IMG/VR virus record: IMGVR_UViG_3300023083_000001
Location: 1-64,000 of that record
Length of the DNA: 64,000 nucleotides
Direction: 5' to 3' (one strand)
Part shown: positions 31,078 through 37,115 of the stretch, piece by piece
Layout of the letters: each line of letters opens with the position of its first letter
Position numbering within the stretch: the stretch's first letter is position 1
Notes under the pieces: model-generated
Database searches by the model: none
What the model was told of the DNA's origin: nothing
The model's input: only the letters and a program-made list of their open reading frames with translations
Made by a program: the position numbers and the translations under genes

Positions 31078-32301
31078 TTACACGTTAGCCGCTGCGTAAG
31101 CATCGGCACGTGCAGCCAGGTCAGGTACTTCACACGCGCCGCCGGCGCAAGCTGCTGCACCCATGGTGTCGACTTCGGTGTAGGTTTCCTGAACGAGCTG
31201 GTCAGCGAAGTTGATCGGTTGCATGGAACGAGTGATGTTCTCCCACTTGTGGAGGTTGTAGACGTCCTTCAAGCAGAAGGTCATCTTCTCCAGGTTACCG
31301 CCGAAGTAGTTACCCGCAAACTTCTTGGCACGGCGTACCCAGTCGCGTGGCAGCAACAGATCAGAGTTGTCGCCAGAGATGTCGATACCCTGACCCATCA
31401 CGGTGGAGCAACCCAACCACAGGTTGTTGTTAAACGCCTCCATGCCATCAACGATCAAGCCCGATGCAAAGATCGCACCTTCGCCGTACAGGTCCATGAT
31501 TTCCTGAGCTTCCAGGACTTCAGTGAACGGAGCCTGAGCGTATGCCTTGTCGCCACTGCCAGCCATCAGACTGATACCGGCAAAGTACTGACGGTTATCA
31601 AAGATGTACTGCTCAACTTCAGCCCACGCCTCGTCGGTGTTTTCTACCGAGATGGTGTTGGAGATGTTGTGGCGGATGCGTTTATCAACCGACAGGCTGT
31701 CATCGCTACCGTGCTCGATCCAGTTCTGCTGAGCCAACTTCACGTATTCCAGTTGCTTCTTGCCCAGCAGGTCTTTCTTGAAGATAGCCGTTTCACTGGA
31801 AACGATCGGGAAGGATACAACCAACGATTTGCCGTTGCTGTCCCAGACCGACTTCTCAACCATTTTCGGGTTGAACTCTTTGATCAGCGGCAGAACGGTT
31901 TCCTGGTCAGTCATCTGCACGTTACGGAAGTAACGCTTGGAGTGTGCGCCGTGGATGCCGGAGTCAGTGCCCAGCAGGACCGAGGCATTACCCGACGGCT
32001 TGGTGGTGGTGGTACGTGGTGCGGGATTGATACCAATCAGCTTGGCAATTTTCTTGTTAGTAGCCAGTACCAACTCAGCCGCAAGCTTCATGTGTTGAGG
32101 ATCGAACAACACACCTGGTTCAGTCATCCATCCGGTGATTGAAACGCCCAACAGAGCCTCGCGCTCAGTGATCTCACGAGTAGCGTCGCCAAGGTAAGTG
32201 AAGTTAGTGTAACCAGCTTGAAGCGTACCCATGATGCCGCCAGCTTTGCTGGCTCGCAGCAGTGCCGCAAGCGTTGTGCACTGCGCGCCATTGGTTTCAG
32301 T
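31078..32301 (-). CDS. nrdJ: class II (AdoCbl-dependent, monomeric) ribonucleotide reductase, exon 2
   Basis: Begins ACT GAA ACC AAT (TETN) after the intron; LLGVSITG, TTTKPSGNAS, HNISNTI, YAQAPF, C-terminal ACAGGACE redox pair. Confidence 0.9.
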   Translation of the reverse strand, partial: TETNGAQCTTLAALLRASKAGGIMGTLQAGYTNFTYLGDATREITEREALLGVSITGWMTEPGVLFDPQHMKLAAELVLATNKKIAKLIGINPAPRTTTTKPSGNASVLLGTDSGIHGAHSKRYFRNVQMTDQETVLPLIKEFNPKMVEKSVWDSNGKSLVVSFPIVSSETAIFKKDLLGKKQLEYVKLAQQNWIEHGSDDSLSVDKRIRHNISNTISVENTDEAWAEVEQYIFDNRQYFAGISLMAGSGDKAYAQAPFTEVLEAQEIMDLYGEGAIFASGLIVDGMEAFNNNLWLGCSTVMGQGIDISGDNSDLLLPRDWVRRAKKFAGNYFGGNLEKMTFCLKDVYNLHKWENITRSMQPINFADQLVQETYTEVDTMGAAACAGGACEVPDLAARADAYAAANV

Positions 32302-32800
32302 CTTTATGTTCAAGGATCAGCGTTAGTCGATCCTCGGGGATTTCTTCGTACGTCCTATACACCCAGTCAGCAAACTTCAACAACTGCGATGGTGTTGCGA
32401 ATGACTTCATCGAGTTTGCCAACTGACTAATTACCTGAACGTTTCCTGGAGCGTAATCGATCGTAGTATCAATTCTATCCAAAGATGGGGAATTGTACTT
32501 CCCACCTGGAGACCCGGAATGGCAGACCAACGGAATGTCCAATACAGGACATCTTTCTGGAATGACGATATCGGCAACGGTAAGACTACAGATCGACTGC
32601 CTGTGTGTACTTCTGGCTTTGGCTCTCGCCAACATCCTGGACTCAGCGCTAGAGCTTTTCACACGCGCCGAGTTACATTTACCGCAAAGGGTAACTGTCT
32701 TAGAAGTCTTTGGAAACATCATACGGCAATTAGTACACTGCCTCTCCGTGTCGGAAATTAAGTTACCTTCACGATTGAGACGGTATTGGGTGGTGGTCAT
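32297..32800 (-). CDS. intron-encoded HNH-superfamily homing endonuclease
   Basis: N-terminal CxxC..CxxC, CPVL, SLDRID....Y.PGNVQVISQLANSMK beta-beta-alpha-Me motif; located 3' of P9. Confidence 0.85.
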   Translation of the reverse strand: MTTTQYRLNREGNLISDTERQCTNCRMMFPKTSKTVTLCGKCNSARVKSSSAESRMLARAKARSTHRQSICSLTVADIVIPERCPVLDIPLVCHSGSPGGKYNSPSLDRIDTTIDYAPGNVQVISQLANSMKSFATPSQLLKFADWVYRTYEEIPEDRLTLILEHKD

Positions 32801-33161
32801 ACGGACATCCTTGAGTTCTGTAATCTACATACTATTCAGAATTCAAGTATATCTACCCACCTGCAAGTCTCCTTGCAGAACAGACTACATCATCACCGAC
32901 TCCTGTCGGTGCTACGCGCTTCCCACCACTTGGCGGTACTCTACTCATCACCTATGTCATCATCCATGTAGGTGCTTTCGATAGTCGTTGAACCCGATTC
33001 GTGATACGTTAGACGTACTTTAGAACCTCGGCTGCTGATTGTCCTGTAATGATAGATTTTCAAGCATTCACGCTCACCGTTTCCAGTCACGTTGTAGCTC
33101 TATCACCTTTAGGAGTTTCCAGCAATTCGCGTAGTTTATTAACGTAACCTCATTGATGTTT
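32302..33161 (-). mobile_element. group I intron (IA2-like), 860 nt, in nrdJ
   Basis: P1 GUAACCUU/GAGGUUAC with U-G at the splice site; P AAUUGCUGGAA, Q AAUCAGCAG, R UUCAACGACUA, S GAUGUAGUC; P3 CUACGCG/CGCGUAG; terminal G; removal restores FCNL|TETN in frame. Confidence 0.93.
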
Positions 33162-34220
33162 AAGGTTACAGAATTGAAAGCCTGAACGACCGTCTTCGGT
33201 GTAAGCCCGCAGACCGATCTCGACACACGGGTTGTAACCCTGCTCGCTGTCTTCTGCGAAGATGAAGCCAGGCTCGCCGAATTCACGAACGGACTTCATG
33301 ATGGTTGCCCACTCAGAACGACCCAGCTCACTGCGGATCAGCAGTGCAGAGTTGTTAGAACGACCACGTTGCGGGTTGGTGGTGTACCAATCGCCTGTCT
33401 TGGCGGTGAGCATTTCTTTGTCATCTTTGGAGAAGATGCAGATCGTTGCAGCGCGCCGTATACCGCCTGACAGAACAGCGTCAGCCATGTGCATGACGAA
33501 GTCGTACGCGTGGATCGGTTTGAGCTGCAATTCAAGGTCTGGGTGTGCGATGCCATCAAGTAGTTCGCGACACTTCTCCAGAGAGCGTTGCAGGCCGTCA
33601 GGACCCGGTGCTTTAAAGCCGCCGGAGATCAATGCGCCGCGTGGACGGACTTCGGAGTAATCGAAGTGCACCTGAGTGTTCTTGTACTCAGGGAACGTAC
33701 CGCCGTCAACGAAGTAGCTGGATAGCAGAACGCCGAATGCGTCAGACCAACCTTCAATGCTGTCCGGCACGACGAAGACTTTGGCTTTGTCTTTACCAGG
33801 TGCAGTGACTTTCGGCAACTTGGCGATGTGGTGCTTTTGTACGGAGAACCCAACACCGCAGCCTGCCAGCAACAGATACATGGCGTGTTGGAAGAACTCG
33901 GTACGGTCGCAGTAGCTGAACGAGCAGTTGTACATACGCGCTTCGTGCTGGAAGATCTGAGGACCACCAAACTGCAAAGCACGCTGGGAGCCAAGTACGG
34001 CTTTATCTTTGTAAGCCAATTCAGCGAAGGCAATTGCCTCTTCCAACTCAGGTGACATTACCGCTGCATACTTCTCGCGGTGCATGTCCATCACACGCTC
34101 TACCGCCTCATCCCACGTCTCATACCGCCCAAGCTTCTCGGAGAACCGAGAATAACCCATGAAAAACTTGGAATCAGCCAACATGTCTTTGGCTAGGCTA
34201 GGTTGGAAGTTAGAATTCAT
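33162..34220 (-). CDS. nrdJ: class II ribonucleotide reductase, exon 1
   Basis: GGAG RBS before ATG 34220; YSR...ETWDEAVERV, MYNCS, GCGVGFS, GGIRRAA, GEPG, NPCVEI (thiyl Cys), FCNL. Confidence 0.9.
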
Positions 34221-34751
34221 TAACAGCTCCGTTGTGTTTTCGTATGACAAATTCTGGAGGATTTACGGTCCCTATATCGCTAGTGACCAGGGTTAAAATC
34301 TACTCTTATTTTTCGTCTTGGACATATACTAAGGTCTGATTTTTCGATTGACTTAATGGTATTAAAACTTAACGTTCAAGCGCTATATATTGACCCCGCA
34401 AACCCTTACTTTGGAGCGTTATCATGAGCAAACAACCGACCTACAGTTCAATCCCAGACCCAAGGGATTTTACACCCAATCAACCAGCAGTTATCCTCCA
34501 ACCGGTTGACGTCAGTGCGATCTGCAATTTCGCAGAGATCTACCCTACCGGAGCCAGCGAAGAAGTTAAGTTCATCGCTAACACTAATCATGTCATCGAT
34601 CTGGCTAGAACGGCCGGGTGGGGTGAGATTACCTTGATAGGTAAACAGATCCTGCTGGTAGCTAAACTCTCCCTGGACGATCCCGGCGTGCCTGCAAAAG
34701 CTGACGAGTAAGCTCCAGATCGTATAACCTACCTTACTGCGGTTATACGTC

Positions 34752-35787: not shown

Positions 35788-36177
35788 ATGACTGATAAGA
35801 ACATCGAAGTAGGCAGTGTTGTCTACCTCAAGAGTGGTTCTCCTGGTTTGACTGTATTGGCCATTTCCGGTGATAGAGGCGGGCAATACCAAGATAAAGA
35901 TGGCGAACGGGTGCGTGGGTTGATGCCTAACCACGTACGAGTCACTTGGGAAGGTCCTCAGGGACTGGCTGAGTTCGAGAACTTCCCCACTGCTTGCGTA
36001 TCCTTGACCAAACCCGTCTGCCCTGACAGTGAAGCAACACTGGCTCGTATCAGGGAACTGCGTGAAATGGTTGCCAACATTCCAAAACGTGAAGTGCCGA
36101 TCAGTGGTCAGCGCCATTGGTACGTACAGCGCGGTGAAGTGCTCGATTGCTTCGATGAAGCCTTGGGTACTTTGTAA
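35788..36177 (+). CDS. DUF2158/YodC-like SH3-fold protein
   Basis: IEVGSVVYLKSGSPGLTV...VTW...FP..CV. Confidence 0.6.
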   Translation: MTDKNIEVGSVVYLKSGSPGLTVLAISGDRGGQYQDKDGERVRGLMPNHVRVTWEGPQGLAEFENFPTACVSLTKPVCPDSEATLARIRELREMVANIPKREVPISGQRHWYVQRGEVLDCFDEALGTL

Positions 36178-36184
36178 AGCGTTC

Positions 36185-36324
36185 GAAGCAGCACGGTGTG
36201 CCAGAGACGGTTGAATGGTGAATAGATGGAGTAACGTCCATTACAGAGCTACAGTGAAGACAGTGTCCGCCTGGGACTATACTGAATCTAACCGTGGGTT
36301 CGAATCCCATCGCCGTGTTGCTTC
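36185..36324 (+). ncRNA. tRNA-like RNA 1 (anticodon arm replaced by ~70-nt domain)
   Basis: 14-bp terminal stem GAAGCAGCACGGTG/CGCCGTGTTGCTTC; class-II-type D arm TG-CCA-GAGACGGTTGAA-TGG; T arm GTGGG-TTCGAAT-CCCAT. Confidence 0.75.
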
Positions 36325-36328
36325 AAAC

Positions 36329-36574
36329 CTCGTTCGCCAGCAGATAAGTCTGGCAAACATTGAGTGTGATGTGCCTAAACTACCCAGGCGCCGGACTGTA
36401 CGTCACCTCTCTTATCGATCCCTACGACCATACCCAGTGAGTCTATTTACTGAATTGCGAGGGAAGTCCACAGCCGCCGCACCCCGATAGGATGTAACCA
36501 CTGGAATAGACTCTGGAGGTTACCGCCCGATACTGACCTGAAAGCGTAAGAAGGTCCGGTTGGTCACGAACGAG
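36329..36574 (+). ncRNA. ~250-nt structured RNA with kissing loops and pseudoknot
   Basis: Closing stem CTCGTTCG/CGAACGAG; complementary hairpin loops GTCTAT and ATAGAC; CCGGACT/GGTCCGG long-range pair; followed by a UUCG hairpin. Confidence 0.65.
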
Positions 36575-36588
36575 ATACCCGTGGCACG

Positions 36589-36610
36589 TTACCTCCCTTC
36601 GGGGAGGTAG
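36589..36610 (+). terminator. UUCG-capped hairpin (terminator or processing/stabilising stem)
   Basis: TTACCTCCC-TTCG-GGGAGGTAG. Confidence 0.6.
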
Positions 36611-36622
36611 CACTTATTATAT

Positions 36623-36726
36623 ACCGAATGCGCTCGAAAGAGCCAGCCAGTAAGGGTGGGTCAGTTCCGCCTCGCTGACCGAGGGTAGGTGCGAAAGGAG
36701 TGGGGTTCAATTCCCCATGATTCAGT
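36623..36726 (+). ncRNA. tRNA-like RNA 2 (degenerate acceptor stem)
   Basis: T arm TGGGG-TTCAATT-CCCCA; GCTC-GAAA-GAGC in D position; GGTCAG/CTGACC internal stem. Confidence 0.5.
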
Positions 36727-36827
36727 CTTAGGGACAATAATCCTTAAGTAACTCTGGTGAGACAAATGGTCCGGGCGACACGCCCGTTAAACGCACCGGC
36801 GGAATCCGGTCGAAGTGTAAAGTTTCT

Positions 36828-36912
36828 GGAGAGGTTCCCGAGCGGTCAAAGGGGGCAGACTGTAAATCTGCTGTCGCGTACTTCGAAGGTTCGAATCCTT
36901 CTCTCTCCACCA
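36828..36912 (+). tRNA. tRNA-Tyr (GTA)
   Basis: GGAGAGG/TCTCTCC acceptor, GCAGA-CTGTAAA-TCTGC anticodon arm, long V arm, GAAGG-TTCGAAT-CCTTC, encoded ACCA. Confidence 0.97.
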
Positions 36913-37015
36913 ATTACGATCCTTTGTAACTGCACGCGACTTGCCATTGAGCGAACGTCATTCGGGCAGAAGCATTAACTTGGCGCTGTTGGCGCTGGGA
37001 GGGTCACCTTTACTC

Positions 37016-37101
37016 GGATCGATAGGGAAGTGGCTTAACCCAACGGCCTGCAAAGCCGTCTTCGAAAGATACCGTCAGTTCAAATCTGACTCGATCCTCC
37101 A
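37016..37101 (+). tRNA. tRNA-Cys (GCA) with long variable region
   Basis: GGATCGA/TCGATCC acceptor, U73, CCA; ACGGC-CTGCAAA-GCCGT; GTCAG-TTCAAAT-CTGAC. Confidence 0.92.
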
Positions 37102-37115
37102 ATTTAGGAATCGGC

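Follow-up and report, generated by a model that had tools for sequence, protein, structure and literature searches.

The nearest precedent for the element described here is the phage T4 RNAC (species 1 RNA, rnaC), and with it RNAD, whose function has been unknown for 50 years (PMC3014915; PMC9697503). RNAC is a stable, phage-encoded RNA of about 140 nt in the tRNA gene region, and has a canonical T arm with a TTCGAAT loop next to a 7-position end helix. It has no anticodon, and a conserved hairpin just upstream of its T arm carries an invariant loop (CGTCAA) that is complementary to an invariant upstream hexamer (TTGACG). The bacterial Y RNAs with a tRNA-like domain, YrlA and Yrn1, are non-decoding RNAs that keep the D-arm and T-arm contacts and the Levitt pair and are recognised by tRNA enzymes, and in Yrn1 the ends lie in the helix that occupies the acceptor position (PMC4201824). 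In the tmRNA, an acceptor and T-arm mimic is joined to pseudoknotted RNA. Finally, phage tRNA-like genes with tens of extra nucleotides between the D and T arms have been described, including the "enigmatic introns" of Lak phages (PMC6784885).

We analyzed a 64,000-nt window (positions 1 to 64,000 of the 258-kb IMG/VR record IMGVR_UViG_3300023083_000001, = Ga0247734_1000011), which is a phiKZ-like jumbo-phage contig. A first-pass annotation of the sequence alone had proposed that positions 36185-36324 (+) encode a selectively maintained tRNA elbow mimic, rather than a decayed tRNA, in which a branched domain replaces the anticodon arm. Our analysis confirms the observation and supports its central inference, although several details require correction. 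In RNAC the D arm is the part replaced, by a hairpin of about 65 nt, whereas here the D arm is intact and the anticodon arm is replaced. No sequence homology to RNAC is detectable, because blastn of the element finds no T4-like phage, and rnaC homologues are confined to T4-like phages. A covariance model of the present family scores RNAC at only 28.7 bits, in a register that disagrees with the consensus fold we computed for RNAC itself. RNAC is therefore considered an analogue, not a demonstrated relative.

Architecture of the element at 36185-36324

The element is bounded by a terminal helix of 14 contiguous pairs, three of them G-U, formed by 36185-36198 (+) and 36311-36324 (+). The inner 7 pairs, CACGGTG/CGCCGTG, were correctly reported by the first-pass annotation, and positions 36192-36198 are the acceptor-stem equivalent. 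No discriminator base or CCA follows the helix, while both neighbouring tRNAs encode CCA. The TG at 36199-36200 (+) occupies tRNA positions 8 and 9. It is followed by a D arm of the long-variable-arm (class II) type at 36201-36218 (+), composed of a 3-bp stem CCA/TGG (36201-03 with 36216-18) and a GAGACGGTTGAA loop of the Ser/Leu/Tyr type, which carries G13, A14, G15, GG and A22. The T arm at 36294-36310 (+), GTGGG-TTCGAAT-CCCAT, is canonical, and 75 nt lie between the D and T arms. The 140 nt fold at -53.4 kcal/mol, with z = -4.5 against 200 shuffles.

Despite the intact core, neither default ARAGORN nor Rfam, at gathering thresholds or with E up to 10, reports anything at this position, while both find the two neighbouring tRNAs. 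The element is also absent from Rfam 15. The homologues L219 and L235 (L numbers are our labels for contigs) reach only 26.3 and 24.9 bits with the Rfam tRNA model (RF00005), against a cut-off of 29. No 5-bp anticodon stem with a 7-nt loop is present in this copy or in the family.

The region between the two arms begins with TGA at 36219-36221 (+), directly after the D stem. Hairpin A, ATGGA-GTAACG-TCCAT, lies at 36226-36241 (+), and a candidate pseudoknot strand, CAGAGC, at 36244-36249 (+). A bulged two-part arm, termed S2, occupies 36261-36284 (+): an outer stem CAGT/ACTG (36261-64 with 36281-84), an inner stem GTCC/GGAC (36265-68 with 36274-77), a loop GCCTG (36269-73) and a 3' bulge TAT (36278-80). 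S2 was not regarded as a K-turn, because inspection reveals no tandem G-A pairs after the bulge. A 9-nt linker at 36285-36293 (+) ends in C36293, which sits where tRNA C48 pairs with G15 (the Levitt pair). Of the inner stems in the first-pass annotation, GGA/TCC (hairpin A) and CAGT/ACTG (outer S2) are kept with compensatory changes in homologues. Its proposed closing stem, TAGAT/ATCTA, exists in this sequence but is absent from L219, L230 and L235, and is probably not real. The middle domain is better described as hairpin A plus a bulged arm with a likely loop-to-strand pseudoknot.

The element lies in a non-coding island. It starts 8 nt after the stop codon of a same-strand ORF (35788-36177), and a terminator-like 10-bp hairpin at 36588-36611 (+), found by a consensus scan only, may end the transcript that carries it. 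Further downstream is a separate conserved structured RNA with T-arm-like hairpins, which we term 2T-RNA (36625-36822, +), in which 31 of 40 pairs show compensatory changes across 9 phages. It is followed by tRNA-Tyr (36828-36912) and tRNA-Cys (37016-37101).

Related RNAs in viral and metagenomic contigs

To evaluate whether the element is unique, we carried out pattern scans, which yielded 10 more distinct relatives in viral and metagenomic contigs. The invariance of some features is partly by selection, since the patterns required parts of the D arm, TGGTGA and the T loop. The D arm is invariant in our alignment (A2), TGA follows it in all 11 members, and TG at positions 8 and 9 is found in 10 of 11, with TA in L235. 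The nucleotide before the T stem is C in 11 of 11, the linker is 6-9 nt in all, and the T stem covaries across the family. Other searches were less productive. A loose D-loop-to-T-loop pattern gave mostly adjacent tRNA genes and coding noise, although it yielded L086 and L097, and a GGAGTAAC-anchored pattern gave only coding noise apart from the window's own contig. A scan of genome contigs gave only noise, so there is no evidence that the family is bacterial. Against cultured phages, blastn of the element gave only T-arm-sized hits and megablast of 24 kb gave nothing useful, and the neighbouring protein finds only the source contig among viral contigs.

Since a MAFFT alignment of long-form and short-form members together misaligned the middle domain, S2 was assessed by a manual parse and by a descriptor test with shuffles. 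In the manual parse both stems are 100% paired in all 11 members, with 3-4 pair types per position. In the descriptor test the S2 architecture occurs in 9 of 11 members, against a mean of 0.78 of 11 (maximum 4) in 2000 shuffles. With a pseudoknot of 4 bp or more, it is 7 of 11 against 0.19. On the MAFFT alignment of the short members, the structure beats all 500 shuffles and all slid controls, with a covariation score of 0.50 against 0.21 for shuffles and at most 0.22 for slides. A covariance model built from 8 short members, without this copy, scores it over its full length at 55.5 bits (E about 1e-13). Notably, however, the same model gives ordinary long-variable-arm tRNAs 30-49 bits, and its score does not separate the family from tRNAs.

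The S2 loop is complementary to an upstream strand (Fisher p = 0.006), suggesting a pseudoknot. The pairing is 4-6 bp in 8 other members and 3 bp in L209, at a consistent position, although the loop geometry varies between members. In the window copy the pairing is weak, with only 3 contiguous pairs, or 5 with a bulged A (36244-49 with 36269-73). Hairpin A is found only in the four long-form members, including this one. L219 has CCGGA-GTAACT-TCCGG, with two compensatory pairs and the same loop, and L235 and L230 have a hairpin at the same place.

The ends also vary. Six members, including this one, close with a 10-20 bp helix and no CCA. L219 has 14 contiguous pairs with an unrelated sequence, and L230, L235, L209 and L231 have long helices with bulges. 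Interestingly, three members have 9 bp plus N-CC(A), implying that a tRNA-like 3' end may matter for them and that the family may not have a single function.

The family resembles long-variable-arm tRNAs of phages, especially tRNA-Ser, whose D arm (TGCCAGAG-GGTTGAATGG) is identical or nearly identical and whose T arm and core tertiary residues are shared. The family most likely derives from such genes. It differs from them in the end helices of 9-14 bp or more instead of 7, and in the 6-9-nt linker before the T stem. The Rfam tmRNA model gives faint end-to-end matches to two members, L170 and L218, at 14-18 bits, far below the cut-off of 47. In contrast to tmRNA, a full D stem is present here, there is no tag reading frame and no G3-U70, the size is 106-144 nt, and ARAGORN finds no tmRNA. 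In the phage tRNA-like genes with inserts, removal of the insert leaves a perfect anticodon arm and variable arm, whereas no such arm exists here and the extra RNA is itself the conserved part.

The neighbouring genes are phage genes, and most loci carry no other tRNA. No protein family is consistently linked to the element, with only an HNH endonuclease shared by three loci and a helicase by two. The nearest ORFs are adaptor, primase-like, HNH, helicase and antirepressor genes rather than integrases, and both halves of the fold are present; an integration-site remnant was rejected.

Possible roles of the RNA

We are highly confident that the element is a conserved, non-decoding member of an undescribed family found in uncultured phages, although only 11 distinct members are known. 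The family descends from, or copies, Ser-like tRNAs with a long variable arm, and keeps every core element that builds the L-shape: U8, G13, A14, G15, G18-G19, A22, a C48-like C, and the T loop. We infer that the RNA cannot be aminoacylated or read a codon. Although there are no expression, processing or binding data, it seems likely that it works as a folded RNA through its tRNA-like core and end helix, most likely by occupying or recruiting a factor that recognises tRNA shape. Overall, a selectively kept mimic of this kind is the reading we favor, with moderate confidence.

Our preferred specific version, which is only tentative, is a decoy or sponge for a host factor or defence nuclease that recognises long-variable-arm tRNAs such as Tyr, Ser and Leu. 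Phage tRNA genes are now seen as weapons against host nucleases that cut tRNAs. Defence nucleases that cut the variable arm of tRNA-Tyr (PMC13096335) and phage tRNA-Tyr acting as a supplement or decoy (PMC10264068) are documented, and the element lies in the same non-coding island as the phage's own tRNA-Tyr. However, nothing links it to any particular defence system. A conserved RNA that keeps the tRNA shape but has given up decoding would be a purer case, as its only possible use would be to be recognised as a tRNA. If so, the family would offer a handle on the host or phage factor that reads tRNA shape during infection, a new fold in which a tRNA core is joined to a bulged, probably pseudoknotted arm, and a comparison point for T4 RNAC and RNAD. 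It is possible, though rather unlikely, that uncultured phages from 18-kb genomes to jumbo phages carry a whole class of such mimics acting as counter-defence decoys or adaptors, in some phages combined with further tRNA-shaped modules and the 2T-RNA into dedicated RNA operons.

Among the alternatives, the least improbable is a processing or stability element, in which a tRNA-shaped fold would direct RNase P or RNase Z-type cleavage or block 3' exonucleases, and thereby define and protect the ends of the upstream mRNA or of the downstream RNA and tRNA transcript, as mascRNA does for MALAT1. Consistent with this, other members also sit just downstream of a same-strand ORF. [quoted passage not shown] On the other hand, a conserved, covarying S2 arm and likely pseudoknot are not needed for that role. 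In this copy the RNase P site would lie inside a continuous 14-bp helix, which is a poor substrate; a 7-bp acceptor stem is a major determinant of cleavage (PMC4201824). In L218, moreover, the element begins the transcript rather than following a gene.

It is also conceivable, but doubtful, that the element is one module of a larger multi-module RNA or RNA-protein particle spanning about 36185-36822, with the element, 260 nt of unknown RNA, and the 2T-RNA. In L218 one promoter-to-terminator unit carries a family member, a second cloverleaf with a 15-bp closing helix, and a 2T-like RNA. In the window the 2T-RNA lies 300 nt downstream on the same strand, and the sealed ends of this copy would suit an internal module. 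However, the terminator-like hairpin described above lies between the two RNAs, and the intervening 36325-36622 is only modestly structured (z = -2.2). Only 2 of 7 family loci with at least 600 nt of downstream sequence show T-arm-like hairpins there, and in other phages the 2T-RNA follows ordinary tRNAs.

A working tRNA gene interrupted by an insert, one of the options raised in the first-pass annotation, is very unlikely. With introns allowed, ARAGORN draws a tRNA-Pro(GGG) with a 46-nt intron, an anticodon stem GAATA/TATAC, a loop CTGGGAC and an 11-nt variable loop, and short inserts in phage tRNA anticodon loops do exist, as in L086, which has tRNA-Leu and tRNA-Ser with 48-49-nt inserts. 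Nevertheless, the proposed stem has an A-A mismatch and is not conserved in L219, L230 or L235, and the intron sits at an odd position. The same procedure calls nothing in 8 of 11 members, and three different anticodons at three different insert positions in the other three, indicating that it mislabels such genes. Under this reading S2 would be partly intron and partly anticodon loop, the 14-bp end helix without a discriminator base or CCA is conserved in L219, and no ribozyme or intron family matches the region.

An antisense regulator matured like a tRNA, as P1 C4 RNA and P4 CI RNA appear to be, with the S2 loop as the seed, is similarly improbable. L126 and L212 carry the element just downstream of an AntA/AntB antirepressor gene. 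However, no significant complement to the S2 hairpin lies within 600 nt on either side in any of 12 loci, the best case being an 8-mer at +59 in the window (p about 0.12). There is no Rfam C4 match, and the likely partner of the loop lies inside the same RNA at a fixed position.

A Y-RNA-like tether, in which the long end helix would bind a Ro60 (Rsr) protein and the tRNA-like part an effector, has equally little support. The overall layout of an end helix plus a tRNA-like module matches that of D. radiodurans Yrn1, and Y RNAs occur in phages (PMC4201824). However, YrlA has the permuted order of T arm, closed acceptor and D arm, with the ends on the anticodon side, whereas the order here is that of a tRNA. 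We read no exact GNCGAA-type Ro-binding motif in the helix, and there is no Rfam match. Y RNAs are defined by Ro60 binding and by lying next to the rsr gene. No TROVE-domain hit was found among the ten window ORFs scanned against Pfam, and the neighbouring small ORFs, scanned against PHROGs only, gave nothing relevant, with only about a quarter of the phage genome visible.

Lastly, a decaying tRNA pseudogene with a random insertion can be largely dismissed although the D and T arms resemble tRNA-Ser-like genes of phages and no tRNA finder calls the element, because all core tertiary-contact residues are intact, ten further distinct relatives in unrelated contigs, which are not ordinary tRNAs carrying a recent insertion, keep the same non-tRNA arm through compensatory changes while acceptor and arm sequences differ completely, and the end helix is extended rather than eroded.

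Sequence and genomic setting of the element

The window is part of a 258-kb viral contig (IMGVR_UViG_3300023083_000001 = Ga0247734_1000011), of which loci L002, L119 and L220 are identical copies. It carries genes for a phiKZ-type internal head protein, thymidylate synthase and class II ribonucleotide reductase, and has no close relative among cultured phages. A group I intron (Rfam, 73.7 bits) at 32861-33171 (-) lies between two minus-strand ORFs, 33150-34250 and 31078-32313, the first of which has a B12-dependent ribonucleotide reductase domain; a 167-aa ORF (32297-32800, -) is located next to it.

The tRNA-like element lies at the start of a non-coding island of about 930 nt (36178-37105), which begins 8 nt after the stop codon of ORF 35788-36177. 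The island also holds a terminator-like hairpin (36588-36611), a conserved structured RNA (36625-36822), tRNA-Tyr (36828-36912) and tRNA-Cys (37016-37101, +). Interestingly, this tRNA-Cys, together with L001:3606-3689 and genes in viral contigs such as L124, L136 and L140, has a Cys anticodon (GCA) but a long extra arm, and in several viral contigs such genes also have the Ser-type D arm. These features are unusual for tRNA-Cys and raise the question of which synthetase charges them.

The features described in the first-pass annotation are all present in the sequence, and the element is real and correctly described. It has a 14-bp helix (36185-98 with 36311-24), TG at the tRNA positions 8 and 9, a 3-bp D stem with a GAGACGGTTGAA loop like that of tRNA-Ser, a GTGGG-TTCGAAT-CCCAT T arm, 75 nt in between, and no CCA. 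The predicted fold is more stable than all 200 shuffles (z = -4.5). Default ARAGORN, and Rfam even at E up to 10, report nothing at this position, while both find the two neighbouring tRNAs.

Relatives and their common architecture

To evaluate whether the element has relatives, we carried out exact-pattern scans of viral, metagenome and genome collections, which gave ten further distinct sequences with the same build. The long form comprises loci L219, L230, L235 and the window copy, with sizes of 133-144 nt and end helices of 10-14 bp without CCA. The short form comprises L231 (L234 is a near-identical variant), L207, L209, L212, L126 (also seen as L208 and L221), L170 and L218, with sizes of 106-130 nt and variable end helices. 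No member occurs in the 50,697 cultured-phage records at blastn sensitivity, none was found in the bacterial and archaeal genome collection, and the family is absent from Rfam 15.

L219 is the closest relative, and has the same D arm. Its hairpin A, CCGGA-GTAACT-TCCGG, has two compensatory pairs and the same loop as ATGGA-GTAACG-TCCAT in the window. Its stem GAGT/ACTC surrounds a GC-rich hairpin with a 3' bulge AAT, where the window has CAGT/ACTG around GTCC-GCCTG-GGAC with a bulge TAT. Notably, its end helix again has exactly 14 contiguous pairs, but with a wholly different sequence and no CCA.

A manual parse gives the common architecture from 5' to 3'. An end helix is followed by TG (TA in L235), the D arm (CCA, loop, TGG), an invariant TGA, hairpin A in the long form only, a strand termed S1a, and a loop of 10-15 nt that is often A-rich. 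Next comes an arm termed S2, with an outer stem of 3-5 bp, an inner stem of 3-4 bp, a loop of 5-9 nt and a 3' bulge of 3-6 nt (AAT, TAT, ATA and similar), and then a 6-9-nt linker that always ends in C, the T arm and the 3' strand of the end helix. The residues that build the tRNA L-shape are all present: U8, G13, A14, G15, GG, A22, the C that would pair with G15 (the Levitt pair), and TTCGAAT. Since our search patterns required parts of the D loop, TGGTGA and the T loop, the invariance of those parts is partly by selection, whereas the complementarity of S2, the invariant C before the T stem, the pseudoknot and the end helices were not required by any pattern.

Three observations support the S2 arm. 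It is 100% paired in all 11 members, with 3-4 different pair types per position. A fixed descriptor finds it in 9 of 11 real sequences, while in 2000 shuffles of the same middle regions the mean is 0.78 of 11 and the maximum is 4. On the unedited MAFFT alignment of eight short members, the five-helix structure exceeds all 500 column shuffles and all slid controls, with a covariation score of 0.50 against 0.21 for shuffles and at most 0.22 for slides, and this holds even though some rows are a column or two out of register.

The S2 loop is complementary to S1a, with 4-6 Watson-Crick pairs in eight members and 3 bp in L209. In the short form the pairing starts 3-5 nt after the D-stem TGG, and in the long form it lies 25-30 nt after the TGG, just past hairpin A. 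The combined p is 0.006 without using position, and with the S2 descriptor the pairing is found in 7 of 11 members, against 0.19 in shuffles. In the window copy, however, this pairing is weak (CAGaGC at 36244-49 with GCCTG at 36269-73), and we therefore treat the pseudoknot as likely for the family and unproven for this copy.

A covariance model made from the eight short members, without the window copy, scores the window element at 55.5 bits (E about 1e-13), L230 at 57.8, L219 at 51.0 and L235 at 40.6. The same model gives ordinary long-variable-arm tRNAs 30-49 bits. It therefore shows kinship with that tRNA class rather than separating the family from it.

Six members close with a long helix and no CCA: the window copy (14 bp), L219 (14 bp), L230 (13 bp with one bulge), L235 (11 bp with one bulge), and L209 and L231, which have long irregular helices. 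L212, L126 and L170 have a 9-bp helix followed by N-CCA or N-CC, L207 has 9 bp without CCA, and L218 has 6-7 bp. Nine or more pairs stacked on a 5-bp T stem is longer than the 12 bp of an elongator tRNA or the 13 bp of tRNA-Sec. Therefore, even the CCA-bearing forms are unlikely to be used by EF-Tu and the ribosome.

Genomic context and possible roles

Most family loci hold no other tRNA gene, so these RNAs are not part of a tRNA supply set, and no protein family is consistently linked to them. In L218, a sigma-70-like promoter that we read in the sequence and a terminator frame one transcript of about 460 nt (L218:371-840, +), which seems to encode three tRNA-shaped modules: a family member (371-477), a second cloverleaf closed by a 15-bp helix with a TATCGAAT T-like loop (about 536-636, z = -5.4), and a diverged copy of the conserved structured RNA of the island, here called the 2T-RNA. 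In the window the 2T-RNA (36625-36822, +) lies 300 nt downstream of the element.

The 2T-RNA is itself a real and apparently undescribed structured RNA of about 190 nt, with one or two T-arm-like hairpins (GGTTCGATTCC), a hairpin with a CAATAA loop, and an invariant GTAACTCTGGTGAGACAAATGG. It is conserved in Pseudomonas phages D6 and Holyagarpour, in Salmonella phage SA002 and in several viral contigs, and was located at L001:2505-2699, L120:1476-1670, L121 about 1501-1647, L201-L206 and L218 about 640-800. Of its 40 predicted pairs, 31 show compensatory changes, and it has no Rfam match. In other phages it usually directly follows an ordinary tRNA.

The sequences demonstrate a conserved fold that keeps the tRNA core and end helix and discards the anticodon arm, with sealed ends in this copy. 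We regard it as a new family among the already known tRNA-mimicking non-coding RNAs, although its function is unproven. We infer that the RNA cannot be charged or decode, so that selection must act on recognition of its tRNA-like shape. The factors that read only that half of a tRNA include processing and modifying enzymes and, as recent work shows, defence nucleases that cut tRNAs. Septu and retron-Eco7 cut the variable arm of tRNA-Tyr, a long-variable-arm tRNA, and phage tRNA-Tyr acts as a supplement or decoy (PMC13096335); phage tRNAs also evade anticodon nucleases (PMC10264068). The likely derivation of the element from a long-variable-arm tRNA, its S2 arm leaving the core on the variable-arm side, and its place beside the phage's own tRNA-Tyr make a decoy or sponge role our preferred specific model, which is only tentative. 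A processing or stability role is less likely but possible, and a role as one module of a larger RNA is somewhat more doubtful again.

The remaining readings fare worse. For an intron-containing tRNA, the proposed anticodon stem has a mismatch and is not conserved in L219, L230 or L235, and ARAGORN calls nothing in 8 of 11 members, while in the other three it calls different anticodons with different insert positions. By contrast, L086:1777-2055 (+), a phage tRNA cluster, has tRNA-Leu and tRNA-Ser(GCU) genes that each carry a 48-49-nt insert in the anticodon loop, with short direct repeats at the insert ends, and that become perfect tRNAs once the insert is removed. This matches the 'enigmatic introns' of Lak phages (PMC6784885), and the present family is not of that kind.

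An antisense regulator of the P1 C4 or P4 CI kind is unlikely, since no significant complementary sites were found within 600 nt in 12 loci and there is no Rfam match. The about 260 nt of non-coding sequence between the element and the terminator-like hairpin (36325-36587, +), which is only modestly structured (z = -2.2) and for which no homologue was found, contains an 8-mer (CCCAGGCG, 36383-36390) complementary to the S2 hairpin, but this is not significant (p about 0.12). A Y RNA is similarly unlikely: YrlA is circularly permuted relative to tRNA (PMC4201824) and this RNA is not, and no Ro60 gene was found among the ORFs scanned, although most of the genome lies outside the window. For tmRNA there is no reading frame, no detector call, and only faint Rfam scores for two members. 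A remnant of an integration site is not indicated, as the neighbouring genes are phage adaptor, primase-like, HNH, helicase and antirepressor genes, not integrases, and the fold is complete. A pseudogene is excluded by the conserved, covarying non-tRNA arm.

Comparison with T4 RNAC

The nearest precedent is T4 RNAC, a stable RNA of about 140 nt in the T4 tRNA region whose function is still unknown (PMC3014915, PMC9697503). To compare the two, we aligned five T4-like rnaC genes, namely phage T4 rnaC (L240:1909-2047, -) and its homologues L241-L244. There is no detectable homology between RNAC and the present family, and in RNAC the D arm is the part replaced; RNAC is therefore an analogue, not a member. 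Nevertheless, its consensus fold is also a tRNA-like cloverleaf with a canonical T arm, and it too has a conserved hairpin, whose invariant loop CGTCAA is complementary to an invariant upstream hexamer, TTGACG. A pseudoknot or tertiary contact is thus possible across T4-like phages, and the stems around these motifs covary.
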